DNA of 64,000 nt, from contig JAUPSS010000014.1 of the NCBI GenBank assembly GCA_040285825.1, forward strand, positions 324,321 to 388,320, written 5' to 3'. How positions within the stretch are numbered: position 1 is the first letter of the stretch; each line of letters starts with the position of its first letter. Of the stretch, positions 49,427 to 64,000 are shown piece after piece. The position numbers and the translations under genes were made by a program. This DNA comes from Eukaryota sp. TZLM1-RC (Eukaryota > Protista > Metamonada: BaSk clade). Under the pieces are notes generated by a model that was not told where the DNA came from, did not search any database, and saw only the letters and a program-made list of their open reading frames with translations.

Positions 49427-50389
49427 TGTTTAGTCTTTTTATCTAAGTTGTTGTTGATAAACTACAACTCCATCCTCAGTTTTGGCAATTAATCTGCAGA
49501 CGTTTTTGGGATTTTTCTCTCTATTTTGATTGCCGTTAGCATTTTTCTTGTGAATAAAATATCCTTAATTTTTTGGTTTTTTATCTATTTGAGTTGGAAT
49601 TCGATAATTGCTACTGCGAAAGTTGAAAACTTAAACTTAAAAACACAGAATTATAACTCTTCCAAGTTAATACTGTTACTATGGGGAAATCTTTAGGGGT
49701 TAAAATGTCTTTGGATTGGTTTTGATCAACATCAATAACAGAGCCAATTATAAGAAGATTACTATAAAATATTGATGAAGATTTTTATTTCGGGTGGTAT
49801 TATGTACTTATTCTGTTTATTTATTAAAAATAGACTGTATCGGTCATTCCTCAAAGATAAACAACCACCAAAGTACCATCAAGCATCAAGGTGTACGATT
49901 GGTTGTGTCCAAAAGCCATATATATAAGTTACAAATGCTAAAACAATGGTAAAGAAACAATTTGAAATATATAATACCAAATTTATAACGTTGAAAGTGG
50001 GTTTATCCTTGCTTGAGAAGAACAAGGCTGTCTTTTTCACTGTTCTGTTTCAACTGTTTGATGGAAAAATAGTGATGTTTGAGGAACAATAACGAATTAC
50101 TCTTTGTAAACACTACAAACATCTACAAACATTATGTTCATTCATAAATTATGGTTGTTGAATTCAAAAGCACAGTCAAAATTTTCACAGGTTTTTTTCA
50201 TAATGTTTATTTATTAACCAACTTATATATCAGCATATAAATAATTCATCTCTCCCAAAACAAAACAACTAAATACAACTCTCTCAAGTGTTCTATTGAA
50301 CCAAATTATATAAAGCAGTTGAGTGTTTCAAATTAGAATTATGTTTTGTATTTAATAATGTTTACATTCGCAACTGATACTTTACAAAT

Positions 50390-50508
50390 GGATGCGGCCA
50401 TACTTGGTCTATAGTACCGGATCCCATTCCGAATTCCGAAGTTAAGGGGCCACAGCCCTGGTTAGTAGTTGGGTGGGAGACCACCAGCGAACACTGGGTG
50501 CTGCATCC
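50390..50508 (+). rRNA. 5S rRNA (first copy of the array, representative)
   Basis: GGATGCGGCCATAC...CCGGATCCCATTCCGAATTCCGAAGTTAAG...AGTAGTTGGGTGGGAGACC...GTGCTGCATCC. Terminal helix GGATGCGGC/GCTGCATCC, Pol III internal A/C boxes, TTTT terminator. Confidence 0.97.
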
Positions 50509-53500
50509 TTTTAACTTTTGTTTGGATTATTATTTCATTATTGAAATTTCCTTGATCTTTTCAAGATCGCATTTGTGTGATTTATGGTCTTAACATTTTT
50601 TGAAAACAAAACATCTCTTCGAATTTTGAAAAAATCAATTAAAACCAGTGTTTTATTGAATTAAATTGCATCAAACAGTTGATAATTTCAAATTAGAATT
50701 ATGTTTTGTATTTAATAATGTTTACATTCGCAACTGGTACTTTACAATTGGATGCGGCCATACTTAGATCTATAGCACCGGATCCCATTCCGAATTCCGA
50801 AGTTAAGCGGCCACAGGCCTGGTCAGTAGTTGGGTGGGAGACCACCAGCGAACACTGAGTGCTGCATCCATATAACTTTTGTTTGGATTATTATTTCTTT
50901 ACTGAAATTTCCTTGACCTTTTCAAGATCGCATTTGTGTGATTTATAGTCTTAACATTTTTTGAAAACAAAACATCTCATTGAATTTTGAATAATTCAAT
51001 TAAAACCAGTGTTTTATTGAACCAAATTGTACCAAACAGTTGGTGATTTCACATTAAAATTATGTTTTGTATTTAATAATGTTGACATTCGCAACTGGTA
51101 CTTTACAATTGGATGCGGCCATACTTGGTCTATAGCACCGGATCCCATTCCGAATTCCGAAGTTAAGCGGCCACAGGCCTGGTCAGTAGTTGGGTGGGAG
51201 ACCACCAGCGAACACTGGGTGCTGCATCCTTTTAACTTTTGTTTGGATTAATATTTCTTTACTGAAATTTCCTTGAACTTTAAAGGTCGCATTTGTGTGA
51301 TTTATGGTCTTGAAATTTTTTGAAAACAAAACATCTCTTCGAATTTTGAATAAATCAATTACAACCAGTGTTCTATTGAACCCAATAATATCAAACAGAT
51401 GATGATTTCAAATTAGAATTATGTTTTGCATTTAATAATGTTTACATTCGCAACTGGTACTTTACAGTTGGATGCGGCCATACTTGGTCTATAGCACCGG
51501 ATCCCATTCCGAATTCCGAAGTTAAGGGGCCACAGGCCTGGTCAGTAGTTGGGTGGGAGACCACCAGCGAACACTGGGTGCTGCATCCTTTTAACTTTTG
51601 TTTGGATTAATATTTTTTTACTGAAATTTCCTTGAACTTTAAAGGTCGCATTTGTGTGATTTATGGTCTTGAAATTTTTTGAAAACAAAACATCTCTTCG
51701 AATTTTGAATAAATCAATTACAACCAGTGTTCTATTGAACCCAATAATATCAAACAGATGATGATTTCAAATTAGAATTATGTTTTGTATTTAATAATGT
51801 TTACATTCGCAACTGATACTTTACAAATGGATGCGGTCATACTTAGATCTATAGCACCGGATCCCATTCCGAATTCCGAAGTTAAGCGGCCACAGGCCTG
51901 GTCAGTAGTTGGGTGGGAGACCACCAGCGAACACTGAGTGCTGCATCCATATAACTTTTGTTTGGATTATTATTTCTTTACTGAAATTTCCTTGACCTTT
52001 TCAAGATCGCATTTGTGTGATTTATAGTCTTAACATTTTTTGAAAACAAAACATCTCATTGAATTTTGAATAATTCAATTAAAACCAGTGTTTTATTGAA
52101 CCAAATTGTACCAAACAGTTGGTGATTTCACATTAAAATTATGTTTTGTATTTAATAATGTTGACATTCGCAACTGGTACTTTACAATTGGATGCGGCCA
52201 TACTTGGTCTATAGCACCGGATCCCATTCCGAATTCCGAAGTTAAGCGGCCACAGGCCTGGTCAGTAGTTGGGTGGGAGACCACCAGCGAACACTGGGTG
52301 CTGCATCCTTCTAACTTTTGTTTGGATTAATATTTCTTTACTGAAATTTCCTTGAACTTTAAAGGTCGCATTTGTGTGATTTATGGTCTTGAAATTTTTG
52401 AAAACAAAACATCTCTTCGAATTTTGAATAAATCAATTACAACCAGTGTTCTATTGAACCCAATAATATCAAACAGATGATGATTTCAAATTAGAATTAT
52501 GTTTTGCATTTAATAATGTTTACATTCGCAACTGGTACTTTACAGTTGGATGCGGCCATACTTGGTCTATAGCACCGGATCCCATTCCGAATTCCGAAGT
52601 TAAGGGGCCACAGGCCTGGTCAGTAGTTGGGTGGGAGACCACCAGCGAACACTGGGTGCTGCATCCTTTTAACTTTTGTTTGGATTAATATTTTTTTACT
52701 GAAATTTCCTTGAACTTTAAAGGTCGCATTTGTGTGATTTATGGTCTTGAAATTTTTTGAAAACAAAACATCTCTTCGAATTTTGAATAAATCAATTACA
52801 ACCAGTGTTCTATTGAACCCAATAATATCAAACAGATGATGATTTCAAATTAGAATTATGTTTTGTATTTAATAATGTTTACATTCGCAACTGGTACTTT
52901 ACAGTTGGATGCGGCCATACTTGGTCTATAGCACCGGATCCCATTCGGAATTCCGAAGTTAAGGGGCCACAGGCCTGGTCAGTAGTTGGGTGGGAGACCA
53001 CCAGCGAACACTGGGTGCTGCATCCTTTTAACTTTTGTTTGGATTAATATTTCTTTACTGAAATTTCCTTGACCTTTTCAAGATCGCATTTGTGTGATTT
53101 ATAGTCTTAACATTTTTTGAAAACAAAACATCTCATTGAATTTTGAATAATTCAATTAAAACCAGTGTTTTATTGAACCAAATTGTACCAAACAGTTGGT
53201 GATTTCACATTAAAATTATGTTTTGTATTTAATAATGTTGACATTCGCAACTGGTACTTTACAATTGGATGCGGCCATACTTGGTCTATAGCACCGGATC
53301 CCATTCCGAATTCCGAAGTTAAGCGGCCACAGGCCTGGTCAGTAGTTGGGTGGGAGACCACCAGCGAACACTGGGTGCTGCATCCTTTTAACTTTTGTTT
53401 GGATTAATATTTCTTTACTGAAATTTCCTTGAACTTTAAAGGTCGCATTTGTGTGATTTATGGTCTTGAAATTTTTTGAAAACAAAACATCTCTTCGAAT

Positions 53501-55061
53501 TTTGAATAAATCAATTACAACCAGTGTTCTATTGAACCCAATAATATCAAACAGATGATGATTTCAAATTAGAATTATGTTTTGCATTTAATAATGTTTA
53601 CATTCGCAACTGGTACTTTACAGTTGGATGCGGCCATACTTGGTCTATAGCACCGGATCCCATTCCGAATTCCGAAGTTAAGGGGCCACAGGCCTGGTCA
53701 GTAGTTGGGTGGGAGACCACCAGCGAACACTGGGTGCTGCATCCTTTTAACTTTTGTTTGGATTAATATTTTTTTACTGAAATTTCCTTGAACTTTAAAG
53801 GTCGCATTTGTGTGATTTATGGTCTTGAAATTTTTTGAAAACAAAACATCTCTTCGAATTTTGAATAAATCAATTACAACCAGTGTTCTATTGAACCCAA
53901 TAATATCAAACAGATGATGATTTCAAATTAGAATTATGTTTTGTATTTAATAATGTTTACATTCGCAACTGGTACTTTACAGTTGGATGCGGCCATACTT
54001 GGTCTATAGCACCGGATCCCATTCGGAATTCCGAAGTTAAGGGGCCACAGGCCTGGTCAGTAGTTGGGTGGGAGACCACCAGCGAACACTGGGTGCTGCA
54101 TCCTTTTAACTTTTGTTTGGATTAATATTTCTTTACTGAAATTTCCTTGAACTTTAAAGGTCGCATTTGTGTGATTTATGGTCTTAAAATTTTTTGAAAA
54201 CAAAACATCTCTTCGAATTTTGAATAAATCAATTACAACCAGTGTTCTATTGAACCCATTTATATCAAACAGATGATGATTTCAAATTAGAATTATGTTT
54301 TGTATATAATAATGTTTACATTTGCAACTGGTACTTTACAATTGGATGCGGCCATACTTGGTCTATAGCACCGGATCCCATTCCGAATTCCGAAGTTAAG
54401 CGGCCACAGGCCTGGTCAGTAGTTGGGTGGGTGACCACCAGCGAACACTGGGTGCTGCATCCTTTTAACATTTGTTTGGATTAATATTTCTTTACTGAAA
54501 TTTCCTTGAACTTTAAAGGTCGCATTTGTGTGATTTATGGTCTTAAAATTTTTTGAAAACAAAACATCTCTTCGAATTTTGAATAAATCAATTACAACCA
54601 GTGTTCTATTGAACCCAATTATATCAAACAGATGATGATTTCAAATTAGAATTATGTTTTGTATATAATAATGTTTACATTCGCAACTGGTACTTTACAA
54701 TTGGATGCGGCCATACTTGGTCTATAGCACCGGATCCCATTGTGAATTCCGAAGTTAAGCGGCCACAGGCCTGGTCAGTAGTTGGGTGGGAGACCACCAG
54801 CGAACACTGGGTGCTGCATCCTTTTAACTTTTGTTTGGATTATTATTTCTTTACTGAAATTTCCTTGAACTTTAAAGGTCGCATTTGTGTGATTTATGGT
54901 CTTAAAATTGTTTGAAAACAAAGCATCTCTTCGAATTTTGAATAAATCAATTACAACCAGTGTTCTATTGAACCCAATTATATCAAACAGATGATGATTT
55001 CAAATTAGAATTATGTTTTGTATTTAATAATGTTTACATTCGCAACTGGTACTTTACAATT

Positions 55062-55151
55062 GGATCCCATTCCGAATTCCGAAGTTAAGCGGCCACAGGC
55101 CTGGTCAGTAGTTGGGTGGGAGACCACCAGCGAACACTGGGTGCTGCATCC
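55062..55151 (+). pseudogene. 5S rRNA copy with a 29-nt 5' deletion
   Basis: Reads TACAATTGGATCCCATTCCG; the segment between the two GGAT tetramers is missing. Confidence 0.9.
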
Positions 55152-56490
55152 TTTTAACTTTTGTTTGGATTATTATTTCTTTACTGAAATTTCCTTGAAC
55201 TTTAAAGGTCGCATTTGTGTGATTTATGGTCTTAAAATTTTTTGAAAACAAAACATCTCTTCGAATTTTGAATAAATCAATTACAACCAGTGTTCTATTG
55301 AACCCAATTATATCAAACAGATGATGATTTCAAATTAGAATTATGTTTTGTATTTAATAATGTTTACATTCGCAACTGGTACTTTACAATTGGATGCGGC
55401 CACACTTGGTCTATAGCACCGGATCCCATTCCGAATTCCGAAGTTAAGCGGCCACAGGCCTGGTCAGTAGTTGGGTGGGAGACCACCAGCGAACACTGGG
55501 TGCTGCATCCTTTTAACTTTTGTTTGGATTATTATTTCTTTACTGAAATTTCCTTGAACTTTAAAGGTCGCATTTGTGTGATTTATGGTCTTAAATTTTT
55601 TTGAAAACAAAACATCTCTTCGAATTTTGAATAAATCAATTACAACCAGTGTTCTATTGAACCCAATTATATCAAACAGATGATGATTTCAAATTAGAAT
55701 TATGTTTTGTATTTAATAATGTTTACATTCGCAACTGGTACTTTACAATTGGATGCGGCCATACTTGGTCTATAGCACCGGATCCCATTCCGAATTCCGA
55801 AGTTATGCGGCCACAGGCCTGGTCAGTAGTTGGGTGGGAGACCACCAGCGAACACTGGGTGCTGCATCCTTTTAACTTTTGTTTGGATTATTATTTCTTT
55901 ACTGAAATTTCCTTGAACTTTAAAGGTCGCATTTGTGTGATTTATGGTCTTAAAATTTTTTGAAAACAAAACATCTCTTCGAATTTTGAATAAATCAATT
56001 ACAACCAGTGTTCTATTGAACCCAATTATATCAAACAGATGATGATTTCAAATTAGAATTATGTTTTGTATTTAATAATGTTTACATTCGCAACTGGTAC
56101 TTTACAATTGGATGCGGCCATATTTGGTCTATAGCACCGGATCCCATTCCGAATTCCGAAGTTATGCGGCCACAGGCCTGGTCAGTAGTTGGGTGGGAGA
56201 CCACCAGCGAACACTGGGTTCTGCATCCTTTTAACTTTTGTTTGGATTATTATTTCTTTACTGAAATTTCCTTGAACTTTAAAGGTCGCATTTGTGTGAT
56301 TTATGGTCTTAAAATTTTTTGAAAACAAAACATCTCTTCGAATTTTGAATAAATCAATTACAACCAGTGTTCTATTGAACCCAATTATATCAAACAGATG
56401 ATGATTTCAAATTAGAATTATGTTTTGTATTTAATAATGTTTACATTCGCAACTGGTACTTTACAATTGGATGCGGCCATACTTGGTCTA

Positions 56491-58184
56491 CCGTATATTG
56501 GTTAGAATTGGTTCAAAAAATAGTGGGAATTTTGGGAATTTTTTGAAAAATTCCCAATTTAAAAATTCCCACTTATTTTTAAACAGTGTTTACACGTGTG
56601 CACTTTTTGGTAACACGTGTCAAATTTTAAATTTTGCGATCCATTGAGACGCATTTGTTTCAACGAAACGAAAAGCAGTCATGATCCATCTTCCCAAATG
56701 GTGATTCAAAGCTCCTCAATTCCCTACTACATATCTCATATATTCGACAATACTATGTCCATTTTGCCACTTTGTAACAGCAGCTTTTGATACACCCTCA
56801 CTTTTTGGTGATAAAGAGTGAATTACTTCACTGGGCCATTCATAATTTGGAACACTGACTTGTGTTTTACCTTCCCAAATCAATTGTAATGGCAGCAAAT
56901 CTCCAGCTTTCGAAATTGTAAGTGTTGCTGTGTTGCCTCTTTTATCACCTAATCCTTGAATAGTGATTTTTTTCTGACCTTTTGGAGCATAAGTTTTTCC
57001 CTTTACTGGAATCCAGGGTACCATGGTTTCGTCCATCATCAGTACTAGGCGCGGGTGATAGTCTTCTGCTGCATCCATAATTGCACTCATTTCTACGGCT
57101 GCATGTTTGGCTTCAACAGGAGTCAATTTTCTGGCAGTGGTAGGCTTTCTATTACTCCATTGCATATGATTTTTCAAAAATGAATACGCCCAGCAGGGGG
57201 TAAATTCAATTGATCCGCCATTACATTTCAATAAATTACCATATCCAGAGCTAATCATCAATTTTTTGGCTGTAGAGGCAACAATCAATGGGGTTATTAT
57301 TGTACTGGCCTTTTCCATAGCTGTAATTAAATTCACCAACTTTTTCTGCATGTCTGTACCAATTAAAGGGCATCTTCCTTTCTTTGGTCGATCCAAAAAT
57401 TCTTCCTTAATTCTATTAGACAACAAAGGCTCATCACATCCTTGAAGAACAAACTTAGCTTTCAAAGCAAGATACTCTTTTTTATATCGGCTGGCATTGG
57501 ACTTGTTCATACCCTTGAAGCGGGCCAACTTGAAACAATAGCTTGCTGTTCTTTGTTCTTTCACCATATACTCAGCAAGTTCAAAATGGCGTTCCATAGG
57601 CCAAGGATTATATGAAGACTTGGCCTTGTCAATGTTGGTGAGGTTGCAGGGTGATTGTAGCACGTCTTTCACCGTTAAACGATCCTCAGGTGGAAGATGT
57701 TCCAGCACTTCTTCAGCAGTGTCGACGTTCAAGACGTCCAAAGTGGTAGATCGTTCAGGAAAATACTCATATAGACGTCTTTGTTTTAAAACAGGTTCAA
57801 GGGCTTTGTCAGGACTGTTCATCAGGTGAGAGATAAAAAAGAGGGTTGTTTCGTCTTCGTGGTCCAAAGTGGTTTATTATCTTGTCTGCCAGCCCTTGGC
57901 TTTTTTCTCTTCTTAAAAGAACGTTTTGTTGATTTGTGATTTATCAAGCATATACATAGACGAAAACCATGTCTAACATTTCAATATGGAGCAATAGTTG
58001 ATACATTTAGTGTTTCTATAAAATTTTGTTATCTGTGTTTACTCAACTTTGCACAAATATGACATACAACAATTTGAGAAAAACATTGGGAATATTGGGA
58101 ACCTTTTGAAAAGTTCCCAATATTTTATTTCCCACTTATAAAAAATTCCCACTATTTTTTGAACCAATTCTAACCAATATACGG
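56491..58184 (-). mobile_element. pogo/Tc1-mariner DNA transposon, 1694 bp, 43-bp perfect TIRs, TA TSD
   Basis: TIR CCGTATATTGGTTAGAATTGGTTCAAAAAATAGTGGGAATTTT at 56491-56533 and its reverse complement at 58142-58184. TA at 56489-56490 and 58185-58186. Confidence 0.95.
56716..57867 (-). CDS. pogo-family (CENP-B-like HTH + DDE_1) transposase, C-terminally incomplete
   Basis: CENP-B-type HTH (FTPCWAYSFLK..W..RKPT), MMDET (first catalytic D), DKRGNTATLTISKAGDLLPLQLIWEGK. The second and third Asp motifs are absent before the stop. True start uncertain. Confidence 0.85.
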   Translation of the reverse strand: MDHEDETTLFFISHLMNSPDKALEPVLKQRRLYEYFPERSTTLDVLNVDTAEEVLEHLPPEDRLTVKDVLQSPCNLTNIDKAKSSYNPWPMERHFELAEYMVKEQRTASYCFKLARFKGMNKSNASRYKKEYLALKAKFVLQGCDEPLLSNRIKEEFLDRPKKGRCPLIGTDMQKKLVNLITAMEKASTIITPLIVASTAKKLMISSGYGNLLKCNGGSIEFTPCWAYSFLKNHMQWSNRKPTTARKLTPVEAKHAAVEMSAIMDAAEDYHPRLVLMMDETMVPWIPVKGKTYAPKGQKKITIQGLGDKRGNTATLTISKAGDLLPLQLIWEGKTQVSVPNYEWPSEVIHSLSPKSEGVSKAAVTKWQNGHSIVEYMRYVVGN

Positions 58185-61100
58185 TATAGCACCGGATCCC
58201 ATTCCGAATTCCGAAGTTAAGCGGCCACAGGCCTGGTCAGTAGTTGGGTGGGAGACCACCAGCGAACACTGGGTGCTGCATCCTTTTAACTTTTGTTTGG
58301 ATTATTATTTCTTTACTGAAATTTCCTTGAACTTTAAAGGTCGCATTTGTGTGATTTATGGTCTTAAATTTTTTGAAAACAAAACATCTCTTCGAATTTT
58401 GAATAAATCAATTACAACCAGTGTTCTATTGAACCCAATTATATCAAACAGATGATGATTTCAAATTAGAATTATGTTTTGTATTTAATAATGTTTACAT
58501 TCGCAACTGGTACTTTACAATTGGATGCGGCCATACTTGGTCTATAGCACCGGATCCCATTCCGAATTCCGAAGTTATGCGGCCACAGGCCTGGTCAGTA
58601 GTTGGGTGGGAGACCACCAGCGAACACTGGGTGCTGCATCCTTTTAACTTTTGTTTGGATTATTATTTCTTTACTGAAATTTCCTTGAACTTTAAAGGTC
58701 GCATTTGTGTGATTTATGGTCTTAAAATTTTTTGAAAACAAAACATCTCTTCGAATTTTGAATAAATCAATTACAACCAGTGTTCTATTGAACCCAATTA
58801 TATCAAACAGATGATGATTTCAAATTAGAATTATGTTTTGTATTTAATAATGTTTACATTCGCAACTGGTACTTTACAATTGGATGCGGCCATACTTGGT
58901 CTATAGCACCGGATCCCATTCCGAATTCCGAAGTTAAGCGGCCACAGGCCTGGTCAGTAGTTGGGTGGGAGACCACCAGCGAACACTGGGTGCTGCATCC
59001 TTTTAACTTTTGTTTGGATTATTATTTCTTTACTGAAATTTCCTTGAACTTTAAAGGTCGCATTTGTGTGATTTATGGTCTTAAAATTTTTGAAAACAAA
59101 ACATCTCTTCGAATTTTGAATAAATCAATTACAACCAGTGTTCTATTGAACCCAATTATATCAAACAGATGATGATTTCAAATTAGAATTATGTTTTGTA
59201 TATAATAATGTTTACATTCGCAACTGGTACTTTACAATTGGATGCGGCCATACTTGGTCTATAGCACCGGATCCCATTGTGAATTCCGAAGTTAAGCGGC
59301 CACAGGCCTGGTCAGTAGTTGGGTGGGAGACCACCAGCGAACACTGGGTGCTGCATTCTTTTAACTTTTGTTTGGATTATTATTTCTTTACTGAAATTTG
59401 CTTGAACTTTAAAGGTCGCATTTGTGTGATTTATGGTCTTAAATTTTTTGAAAACAAAACATCTCTTCGAATTTTGAATAAATCAATTACAACCAGTGTT
59501 TTATTGAACCAAATTGTACCAAACAGTTGGTGATTTCACATTAAAATTATGTTTTGTATTTAATAATGTTGACATTCGCAACTGGTACTTTACAATTGGA
59601 TGCGGCCATACTTGGTCTATAGCACCGGATCCCATTCCGAATTCCGAAGTTAAGCGGCCACAGGCCTGGTCAGTAGTTGGGTGGGAGACCACCAGCGAAC
59701 ACTGGGTGCTGCATCCTTTTAACTTTTGTTTGGATTAATATTTCTTTACTGAAATTTCCTTGAACATTAAAGGTCGCATTTGTGTGATTTATGGTCTTGA
59801 AATTTTTTGAAAACAAAACATCTCTTCGAATTTTGAATAAATCAATTACAACCAGTGTTCTATTGAACCCAATTATATCAAACAGATGATGATTTCAAAT
59901 TAGAATTATGTTTTGTATATAATAATGTTTACATTCGCAACTGGTACTTTACAATTGGATGCGGCCATACTTGGTCTATAGCACCGGATCCCATTCTGAA
60001 TTCCGAAGTTAAGCGGCCACAGGCCTGGTCAGTAGTTGGGTGGGAGACCACCAGCGAACACTGGGTGCTGCATTCTTTTAACTTTTGTTTGGATTATTAT
60101 TTCTTTACTGAAATTTCCTTGAACTTTAAAGGTCGCATTTGTGTGATTTATGGTCTTAAATTTTTTGAAAACAAAACATCTCTTCGAATTTTGAATAAAT
60201 CAATTACAACCAGTGTTTTATTGAACCAAATTGTACCAAACAGTTGGTGATTTCACATTAAAATTATGTTTTGTATTTAATAATGTTGACATTCGCAACT
60301 GGTACTTTACAATTGGATGCGGCCATACTTGGTCTATAGCACCGGATCCCATTCCGAATTCCGAAGTTTAGCGGCCACAGGCCTGGTCAGTAGTTGGGTG
60401 GGAGACCACCAGCGAACACTGGGTGCTGCATCCTTTTAACTTTTGTTTGGATTAATATTTCTTTACTGAAATTTCCTTGAACTTTAAAGGTCGCATTTGT
60501 GTGATTTATGGTCTTGAAATTTTTTGAAAACAAAACATCTCTTCGAATTTTGAATAAATCAATTACAACCAGTGTTCTATTGAACCCAATTATATCAAAC
60601 AGATTATGATTTCAAATTTGAATTATGTTTTGTATTTAATAATGTTTACATTCGCAACTGGTACTTTACAGTTGGATGCGGCCATACTTGGTCTATAGCA
60701 CCGGATCCCATTCCGAATTCCGAAGTTAAGCGGCCACAGGCCTGGTCAGTAGTTGGGTGGGAGACCACCAGCGAACACTGGGTGCTGCATCCTTTTAACT
60801 TTTGTTTGGATTAATATTTCTTTACTGAAATTTCCTTGAACTTTAAAGGTCGCATTTGTGTGATTTATGGTCTTGAAATTTTTTGAAAACAAAACATCTC
60901 TTCGAATTTTGAATAAATCAATTACAACCAGTGTTCTATTGAACCCAATTATATCAAACAGATTATGATTTCAAATTTGAATTATGTTTTGTATTTAATA
61001 ATGTTTACATTCGCAACTGGTACTTTACAATTGGATGCGGCCATACTTGGTCTATAGCACCGGATCCCATTCCGAATTCCGAAGTTAAGCGGCCACAGGC

Positions 61101-64000
61101 CTGGTCAGTAGTTGGGTGGGAGACCACCAGCGAACACTGGGTGCTGCATCCTTTTAACTTTTGTTTGGATTATTATTTCTTTACTGAAATTTCCTTGAAC
61201 TTTAAAGGTCGCATTTGTGTGATTTATGGTCTTAAAATTTTTGAAAACAAAACATCTCTTCGAATTTTGAATAAATCAATTACAACCAGTGTTCTATTGA
61301 ACCCAATTATATCAAACAGATGATGATTTCAAATTAGAATTATGTTTTGTATTTAATAATGTTTACATTCGCAACTGGTACTTTACAATTGGATGCGGCC
61401 ATACTTGGTCTATAGCACCGGATCCCATTCCGAATTCCGAAGTTAAGCGGCCACAGGCCTGGTCAGTAGTTGGGTGGGAGACCACCAGCGAACACTGGGT
61501 GCTGCATCCATTTAACTTTTGTTTGGATTATTATTTCTTTACTGAAATTTCCTTGAACTTTAAAGGTCGCATTTGTGTGATTTATGGTCTTAAAATTTTT
61601 TGAAAACAAAACATCTCTTCGAATTTTGAATAAATCAATTACAACCAGTGTTCTATTGAACCCAATTATATCAAACAGATGATGATTTCAAATTAGAATT
61701 ATGTTTTGTATTTAATAATGTTTACATTCGCAACTGGTACTTTACAATTGGATGCGGCCATACTTGGTCTATAGCACCGGATCCCATTCCGAATTCCGAA
61801 GTTAAGTGGCCACAGGCCTGGTCAGTAGTTGGGTGGGAGACCACCAGCGAACACTGGGTGCTGCATCCTTTTAACTTTTGTTTGGATTATTATTTCTTTA
61901 CTGAAATTTCCTTGAACTTTAAAGGTCGCATTTGTGTGATTTATGGTCTTAAAATTTTTTGAAAACAAAACATCTCTTCGAATTTTGAATAAATCAATTA
62001 AAACCAGTGTTCTATTGAACCCAATTATATCAAACAGATGATGATTTCAAATTAGAATTATGTTTTGTATTTAATAATGTTGACATTCGCAACTGGTACT
62101 TTACAATTGGATGCGGCCATACTTGGTCTATAGCACCGGATCCCATTCCGAATTCCGAAGTTAAGCGGCCTCAGGCCTGGTCAGTAGTTGGGTGGGAGAC
62201 CACCAGCGAACACTGGGTGCTGCATCCTTTTAACTTTTGTTTGGATTAATATTTCTTTACTGAAATTTCCTTGAACTTTAAAGGTCGCATTTGTGTGATT
62301 TATGGTCTTGAAATTTTTTGAAAACAAAACATCTCTTCGAATTTTGAATAAATCAATTACAACCAGTGTTCTATTGAACCCAATTATATCAAACAGATTA
62401 TGATTTCAAATTTGAATTATGTTTTGTATTTAATAATGTTTACATTCGCAACTGGTACTTTACAATTGGATGCGGCCATACTTGGTCTATAGCACCGGAT
62501 CCCATTCCGAATTCCGAAGTTAAGCGGCCACAGGCCTGGTCAGTAGTTGGTGGGAGACCACCAGCGAACACTGGGTGCTGCATCCTTTTAACTTTTGTTT
62601 GGATTATTATTTCTTTACTGAAATTTCCTTGAACTTTAAAGGTCGCATTTGTGTGATTTATGGTCTTAAAATTTTTTGAAAACAAAACATCTCTTCGAAT
62701 TTTGAATAAATCAATTACAACCAGTGTTCTATTGAACCCAATTATATCAAACAGATGATGATTTCAAATTAGAATTATGTTTTTGTATTTAATAATGTTT
62801 ACATTCGCAACTGGTACTTTACAATTGGATGCGGCCATACTTGGTCTATAGCACCGGATCCCATTCCGAATTCCGAAGTTAAGCGGCCACAGGCCTGGTC
62901 AGTAGTTGGGTGGGAGACCACCAGCGAACACTGGGTGCTGCATCCATTTAACTTTTGTTTGGATTATTATTTCTTTACTGAAATTTCCTTGAACTTTAAA
63001 GGTCGCATTTGTGTGATTTATGGTCTTAAAATTTTTGAAAACAAAACATCTCTTCGAATTTTTGAATAAATCAATTACAACCAGTGTTCTATTGAACCCA
63101 ATTATATCAAACAGATGATGATTTCAAATTAGAATTATGTTTTGTATTTAATAATGTTTACATTCGCAACTGGTACTTTACAATTGGATGCGGCCATACT
63201 TGGTCTATAGCACCGGATCCCATTCGAATTCCGAAGTTAAGTGGCCACAGGCCTGGTCAGTAGTTGGGTGGGAGACCACCAGCGAACACTGGGTGCTGCA
63301 TCCTTTTAACTTTTGTTTGGATTATTATTTCTTTACTGAAATTTCCTTGAACTTTAAAGGTCGCATTTGTGTGATTTATGGTCTTAAAATTTTTGAAAAC
63401 AAAACATCTCTTCGAATTTTTGAATAAATCAATTAAAACCAGTGTTCTATTGAACCCAATTATATCAAACAGATGATGATTTCAAATTAGAATTATGTTT
63501 TGTATTTAATAATGTTGACATTCGCAACTGGTACTTTACAATTGGATGCGGCCATACTTGGTCTATAGCACCGGATCCCATTCCGAATTCCGAAGTTAAG
63601 CGGCCTCAGGCCTGGTCAGTAGTTGGGTGGGGAGACCACCAGCGAACACTGGGTGCTGCATCCTTTTAACTTTTGTTTGGATTATTATTTCTTTACTGAA
63701 ATTTCCTTGAACTTTAAAGGTCGCATTTGTGTGATTTATGGTCTTAAAATTTTTGAAAACAAAACATCTCTTCGAATTTTTGAATAAATCAATTACAACC
63801 AGTGTTCTATTGAACCCAATTATATCAAACAGATGATGATTTCAAATTAGAATTATGTTTTGTATATAATAATGTTTACATTCGCAACTGGTACTTTACA
63901 ATTGGATGCGGTCATACTTGGTCTATAGCACCGGATCCCATTCCGAATTCCGAAGTTAAGCGGCCACAGGCCTGGTCAGTAGTTGGGTGGGAGACCACCA

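Follow-up and report, generated by a model that had tools for sequence, protein, structure and literature searches.

Did the pogo-type transposon that interrupts a 5S rRNA gene of Skoliomonas litria land there by chance, or was the site chosen? Pogo and Tc1/mariner elements are taken to be near-random TA inserters. The element lies on contig JAUPSS010000014.1 of Eukaryota sp. TZLM1-RC, which is S. litria (PMC11603281), in a stretch of 64,000 nucleotides that was analyzed as a whole (the window). The host genome comprises 31.9 Mb in 16 contigs and is 55.4% repetitive (PMC11316075). The 5S array, the element, and the gene that it interrupts occupy the following positions.

50287-64000, plus strand: host 5S rDNA tandem array of 359-bp units, running past the window end (34 Rfam 5S matches; TRF)
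55062-55151, plus strand: 5S copy lacking 29 bp across the +21/22 site (deletion with GGAT microhomology)
56469-56490, plus strand: 5' piece of the interrupted 5S rRNA gene (+1 to +22)
56489-56490, plus strand: TA target site (5S +21/22), left copy
56491-58184, minus strand: 1694-bp pogo-type DNA transposon, non-autonomous, with transposase and 5S gene on opposite strands, 99.7% identical to the copy at locus L001
56491-56533, plus strand: 43-bp terminal inverted repeat (TIR) at the 3' end of the element, beginning CCGTA
56516-56576, plus strand: subterminal repeat 1, 82% identical to 58079-58139 by self-BLAST
58079-58139, plus strand: subterminal repeat 2, by self-BLAST
58142-58184, minus strand: 43-bp TIR at the 5' end of the element
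58185-58186, plus strand: TA target-site duplication, right copy
58185-58283, plus strand: 3' piece of the interrupted 5S gene (+21 to +119), Rfam 54.9 bits

An earlier note on this DNA had described a 1694-bp element with perfect 43-bp TIRs and a TA duplication at 5S +21/22, and that description is exact: in silico removal of the element and one TA restores the exact 5S gene, whose internal promoter region is presumably retained in the 3' piece (58185-58283). The subterminal repeats likely represent candidate binding sites for the transposase. The clean TIRs and duplication, and the existence of another copy on a different contig, make an assembly artifact unlikely. The same note had remarked that the 119-nt gene holds few TA sites and the 240-nt spacer many; we counted 5 and 21, respectively, so that random TA insertion into the array would strike a gene with a 19% chance, and the window insertion alone therefore proves nothing. 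Elsewhere in the array, the 29-bp deletion in the 5S copy at 55062-55151 may be a scar of excision or cleavage, and the left part (50390-54344) contains a 3-unit higher-order repeat together with a divergent unit type whose gene is 1 nt longer.

The coding remains of the element, all antisense to the 5S gene, are as follows.

56716-57822, minus strand: truncated transposase open reading frame (ORF), 368 aa from the first ATG, with an N-terminal helical region and the first catalytic Asp, stopping at the internal deletion
57760-57783, minus strand: PIP-box (PCNA-binding) motif QRRLYEYF, residues 14-21 (reached in 0.8% of shuffles; consensus from PMC5371812)
57031-57033, minus strand: first catalytic Asp (MMDET motif)
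56717-56718, minus strand: junction of a ~319-bp internal deletion that removed the last two Asp residues of the DD35D triad, common to L001
56631-56636, minus strand: junction of a ~150-bp deletion over the ORF end, near the 3' end of the element, common to L001

With the second and third catalytic Asp deleted, the window copy cannot encode an active enzyme and must, we infer, have moved in trans, as a young, internally deleted derivative of an element whose full length we approximate at 2158 bp (~2.16 kb). No intact family copy was found among annotated proteins. The only close protein matches of the window ORF are proteins of Eukaryota sp. TZLM1-RC, a PDB sequence search with it gave no match, and because of the internal deletion it has no Pfam match either; the sister copy P0003 matches Pfam DDE_1 at 37 bits (cut-off 22), and both P0003 and most relatives carry the DD35D triad, which the window copy lacks. 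We discarded a ciliate-type genetic code, because 383 codons contain no in-frame TAA/TAG. The predicted structure of a relative, P0012 (pLDDT 77.5), is all helical in its N-terminal half and has Mos1 and SETMAR as its best Foldseek matches (E 6e-8), which points to the RNase H-like DDD/E transposase and mariner-type fold of IS630-Tc1-mariner elements. TA duplications and TIRs, likewise expected of that group, are present in the window copy and in L001, L004, and L005. The DDE_1 domain and DDxD triad of P0003 agree with the pogo superfamily, in which the triad spacing ranges from 29 to 59 and DD35D marks the Passer and Fot families (PMC7386202). Judged by target-site duplication, TIRs, DDE_1 domain, and DD35D triad, the window element is a pogo-type IS630-Tc1-mariner element. 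Its family resembles the pogo superfamily (PMC7386202) in DDE_1, DD35D, TA duplication, 43-bp TIR, a full length of ~2.2 kb, and a single ORF, and resembles Drosophila pogo in its PIP box, but differs in having no Pfam match to the known pogo N-terminal DNA-binding motifs (CENP-B_N, HTH_Tnp_Tc5, BrkDBD, HTH_psq, and HTH_ABP1_N). The family falls in a divergent clade with proteins from Skoliomonas RCL, Pelomyxa, and metagenomes; a protein tree made from search hits only, without reference pogo transposases, is mostly unresolved and too poor to place it.

Our sample of this family consists of the window copy and eight further loci (L001 to L008), which were reached via annotated proteins of one assembly and are not a genome-wide census. 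L001, from a different contig, interrupts a small 5S array at the same TA (+21/22); its orientation is reversed and its flanks differ. It is 99.7% identical to the window element and has both internal deletions in common with it. A single substitution separates the elements over 1690 bp, against 4 over 300 bp of flank (Fisher P = 0.002), and the two interrupted 5S units have zero derived variants in common. Because the flanks diverge more than the elements and no derived variant is held in common, the two 5S copies probably represent independent insertions; a single event, followed by transfer and a flip between the TIRs, is a conceivable but less probable alternative.

Four other copies end next to tRNA genes. 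L002 and L008 each retain an intact 3' TIR that abuts a TA, with the +1 of tRNA-Ala and tRNA-Ser, respectively, as the very next base; the 3' end of L003, its last two bases changed, lies 10-11 bp upstream of tRNA-Cys, and L007 is a 3'-truncated copy whose end lies 11 bp upstream of tRNA-Leu. All four are without a 5' TIR, and their duplications are uncheckable. The remaining three lie elsewhere, L004 adjoining a solo LTR, L005 inside a hairpin that lies 3' of a Fanzor ORF, and L006 within a hAT relic, and neither Rfam nor an A/B-box scan found a hidden Pol III gene at any of them. The earlier note had proposed a 5S-targeted pogo family, and the second copy at the same 5S TA upholds the idea of targeting, whereas specificity for 5S falls with seven of the eight other copies lying outside it. 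Nor do those copies simply lie at unrelated TA sites, the outcome that the note took to speak against its proposal: four of the seven non-5S copies end at tRNA gene starts. The suggestion that the array serves as a safe harbor survives only by way of copy number, since an insertion within the gene destroys that 5S copy.

A Gypsy LTR at L001:4023-4182 stops 5 bp short of 5S +1, on the upstream side, in a Ty3-like position; its family is also represented at L004 by a solo LTR (L004:10587-10747) that 8 bp separate from the 3' end of the pogo copy. Also at L001, the last 5S unit has its spacer interrupted by the ~130-bp end of another widespread repeat (L001:7815-7945), which recurs in L002-L005, L007, and L008. 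At L005:9621-10491 the copy is inserted in a near-perfect palindrome ~350 bp 3' of the Fanzor-like ORF, possibly an omega-RNA or an element end. Where the tRNA-Ser copy breaks off on its 5' side, another S. litria pogo family is represented by one of its ends (L008:10030-10098), whose TIR begins CCGTGTTT, like that of the RCL family. An older TIR relic, 81% similar, sits at L007:10826-10877, ~65 bp downstream of the same tRNA-Leu, and a near-identical tRNA-Leu with other flanks is found at L007:130.

In total, six of the nine family copies are at tRNA or 5S genes and three are elsewhere; when the copy chosen for its 5S location is set aside, Pol III gene starts are the sites of 5/8 (L001, L002, L003, L007, and L008), a small sample. 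Counting intact TIR-TA junctions only, the figure is 4/7 copies at Pol III gene starts, or 3/6 without the window copy. Just one other tRNA gene was present in the 205 kb of S. litria DNA examined. With 2000 tRNA genes assumed, the binomial probability of four of eight copies lying within 15 bp of a tRNA gene is 9e-10, and that of two exact -2/-1 tRNA junctions is at most 3e-5; a second insertion at the 5S TA has P = 4e-4 to 8e-3 for 100 to 2000 5S copies, and we estimate the probability of the Pol III association arising by chance at below 1e-8, all of these figures presuming independent, uniform insertion. Purifying selection alone is an unlikely cause in a genome 55% repetitive, since a repeat content of 55.4% (PMC11316075) leaves ample neutral landing space.

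As controls we used related families from Skoliomonas RCL, Pelomyxa, and metagenomes, whose catalytic region shares 33-39% identity with that of P0003 and which, where their ends could be read, have TIRs that begin CCGT with TA flanking. None of eight insertions of these relatives is at a tRNA or 5S gene, compared to six of nine in the window family (Fisher P = 0.009), with the qualification that some flanks span only 40-80 bp and four of the eight come from one family; the metagenome scan contributed three loci, only one of them with both ends. Given this absence among relative insertions, the Pol III preference seems particular to the window family among the relatives sampled. A complete 5S copy, as a 125-nt insert, lies antisense within a related pogo transposase ORF of Skoliomonas RCL (L010:10655-10774); it has no clear duplication, is missing from L011, which is 98% identical to the L010 copy, and is probably a 5S retrocopy. 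The same eukaryotic contig carries a Pistol ribozyme match at L010:9334-9396 (50.8 bits, gathering score 34.5). Between its TIRs, a metagenomic relative has an additional, convergent ORF that encodes a HIRAN domain (L015:3119-3397), and other relatives of the window family have a C-terminal PHD finger.

Within the regions that are hit, the choice of TA may follow a local rule. A purine stands five bases outside the TA in 9/9 half-sites of the window family and in 11/14 of the relatives, against a background of 0.50, a pattern that carries little weight because it emerged after inspection of 10 positions. The four tRNA targets differ from one another and have in common only TA and the purine 5 bases out, which is why a positional rule fits them. 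The enrichment of GGTC-TA-TAGC that the earlier note had suggested looking for did not appear as a consensus across the junctions, and we rejected a 5S-like target consensus. The motif Y-N4-TA-N4-R fits 7 of the 26 TAs of the 5S unit, and from -39 to +149 no TA other than +21/22 fits it. For a second insertion in the array, the local rule by itself would produce the same-TA match with a 1-in-7 chance. We regard Y-N4-TA-N4-R as a weakly indicated local insertion preference.

We propose, with a probability of roughly 0.6, that a regional choice directed by Pol III genes combines with this local TA rule in the DD35D pogo-type family of S. litria. In a regional step, the transpososome would be attracted to Pol III genes, tRNA and 5S alike, at their 5' ends; in a local step, it would insert at a nearby TA, favoring Y-N4-TA-N4-R. 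Together, the regional pull to the gene start and the local rule would explain why 5S +21/22, the sole fitting TA from -39 to +149, was struck repeatedly. A regional preference for the 5' ends of Pol III genes, both 5S and tRNA, we consider highly likely in its own right. The attraction would most plausibly come from binding of a Pol III factor or the polymerase itself, as Ty3 integrase does with TFIIIB, and by this analogy we give protein tethering an even chance of being the cause. Slightly more tentative is the suggestion that a eukaryotic cut-and-paste transposase independently evolved Pol III tethering in one Skoliomonas lineage, its relatives at 33-39% identity having no such preference. 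Against the proposal, three of nine copies lie away from Pol III genes, two tRNA-adjacent copies have damaged 3' ends, and 5S +21 is within the gene and not at the start site as in Ty3; we identified no targeting domain in the transposase.

The preference could also be indirect, the transposase reaching paused replication forks via its PCNA motif, or nucleosome-free DNA, with busy tRNA and 5S genes the strongest such sites. The canonical PIP box at residues 14-21 fits this reading, as do the reports that Drosophila pogo transposase binds PCNA and that forks are arrested where DNA is heavily transcribed or tightly bound (PMC5371812), and the spread of positions from about -11 to +21 is looser than the 1-4 nt window of Ty3 (PMC5911963). 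However, PIP-like motifs are equally placed in P0012, P0015, P0022, and P0023, and the sampled insertions of P0012 and P0015 are not at Pol III genes, while open chromatin would predict insertion at ~15,000 protein-gene promoters too, where we found no intact end. We therefore think an indirect route unlikely. A 5S sequence specialist at +21/22 in the manner of Dada-5S or Pokey, much as the earlier note had suggested, would account for two copies in opposite orientations at exactly that TA, both of one deletion subfamily, and for the deletion that spans this site in the 5S copy at 55062, but is largely refuted by the seven of eight other copies (L002-L008), several of them 97-99.8% identical, that lie at unrelated sequences, and we consider it very improbable.

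Alternatively, the family could be a generic TA inserter in which deletions, either ordinary or transposase-made adjacent ones starting at one end, erode the flank up to an essential gene, tRNA genes with their internal promoters tolerating the contact, and in which the 5S pair descends from one event by ectopic recombination and a TIR flip. Every tRNA-adjacent copy is indeed 5'-truncated, with damaged 3' ends in L003 and L007; the two 5S copies, 99.7% identical, have both internal deletions in common, and a flip between identical TIRs would be traceless in sequence. Yet such erosion predicts far more ends at protein genes than at tRNA genes, where we observed 0 and 4, respectively, and it requires two exact junctions of TIR, TA, and tRNA +1 and, for the 5S pair, transfer without flanks plus an inversion. 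It also gives no reason for both effects to favor Pol III genes, and we judge it rather improbable.

If Pol III-directed choice with a local TA rule is correct, a DD35D transposase has a several hundred-fold or greater preference for tRNA and 5S starts, and the convergence known among retrotransposons, in which positional target choice at Pol III genes evolved many times, would extend to class II elements. The related families without the preference offer a natural comparison for mapping its determinant. Pogo-family transposases (Passer) are already in use as gene-delivery tools, which would give a natural steering signal to multicopy genes practical interest. We found no report of a pogo, mariner, or other IS630-Tc1-mariner element targeting Pol III genes in the open literature, our coverage of which was incomplete; there, such a habit was on record for retrotransposons alone, and the probable preference would be new for this transposon group.

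To our knowledge, the DNA transposons previously described from RNA genes (Dada and Pokey) are each tied to a fixed site in a single gene type. Like Dada (including Dada-5S) and Pokey, the window family consists of DNA transposons in multicopy RNA genes, 5S and tRNA genes among them (PMC8869645), but those belong to other superfamilies (Dada; piggyBac), and Dada families keep to one site whose primary sequence they recognize (PMC8869645), whereas copies of the window family are not confined to one conserved RNA-gene sequence and use unrelated sequences in several gene types. The Pol III-targeting elements Ty3, Tj1, DGLT-A, NLTR-A, and TRE5 are all retrotransposons, and Ty3, which needs TFIIIB, inserts 1-4 nt from the start site (PMC5911963). 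With these the family shares insertion a few to tens of bp from tRNA and 5S starts, whatever the local sequence (PMC5911963), and an excess of insertions at the 5' ends of varied Pol III genes (5/8 copies sampled regardless of site, a small number). It differs in its TA-bound, cut-and-paste transposase, its leakiness (6/9), and a 5S site inside the gene. The family thus appears to work like the Ty3 class of Pol III targeting, leakily, with factor binding suggested by analogy.
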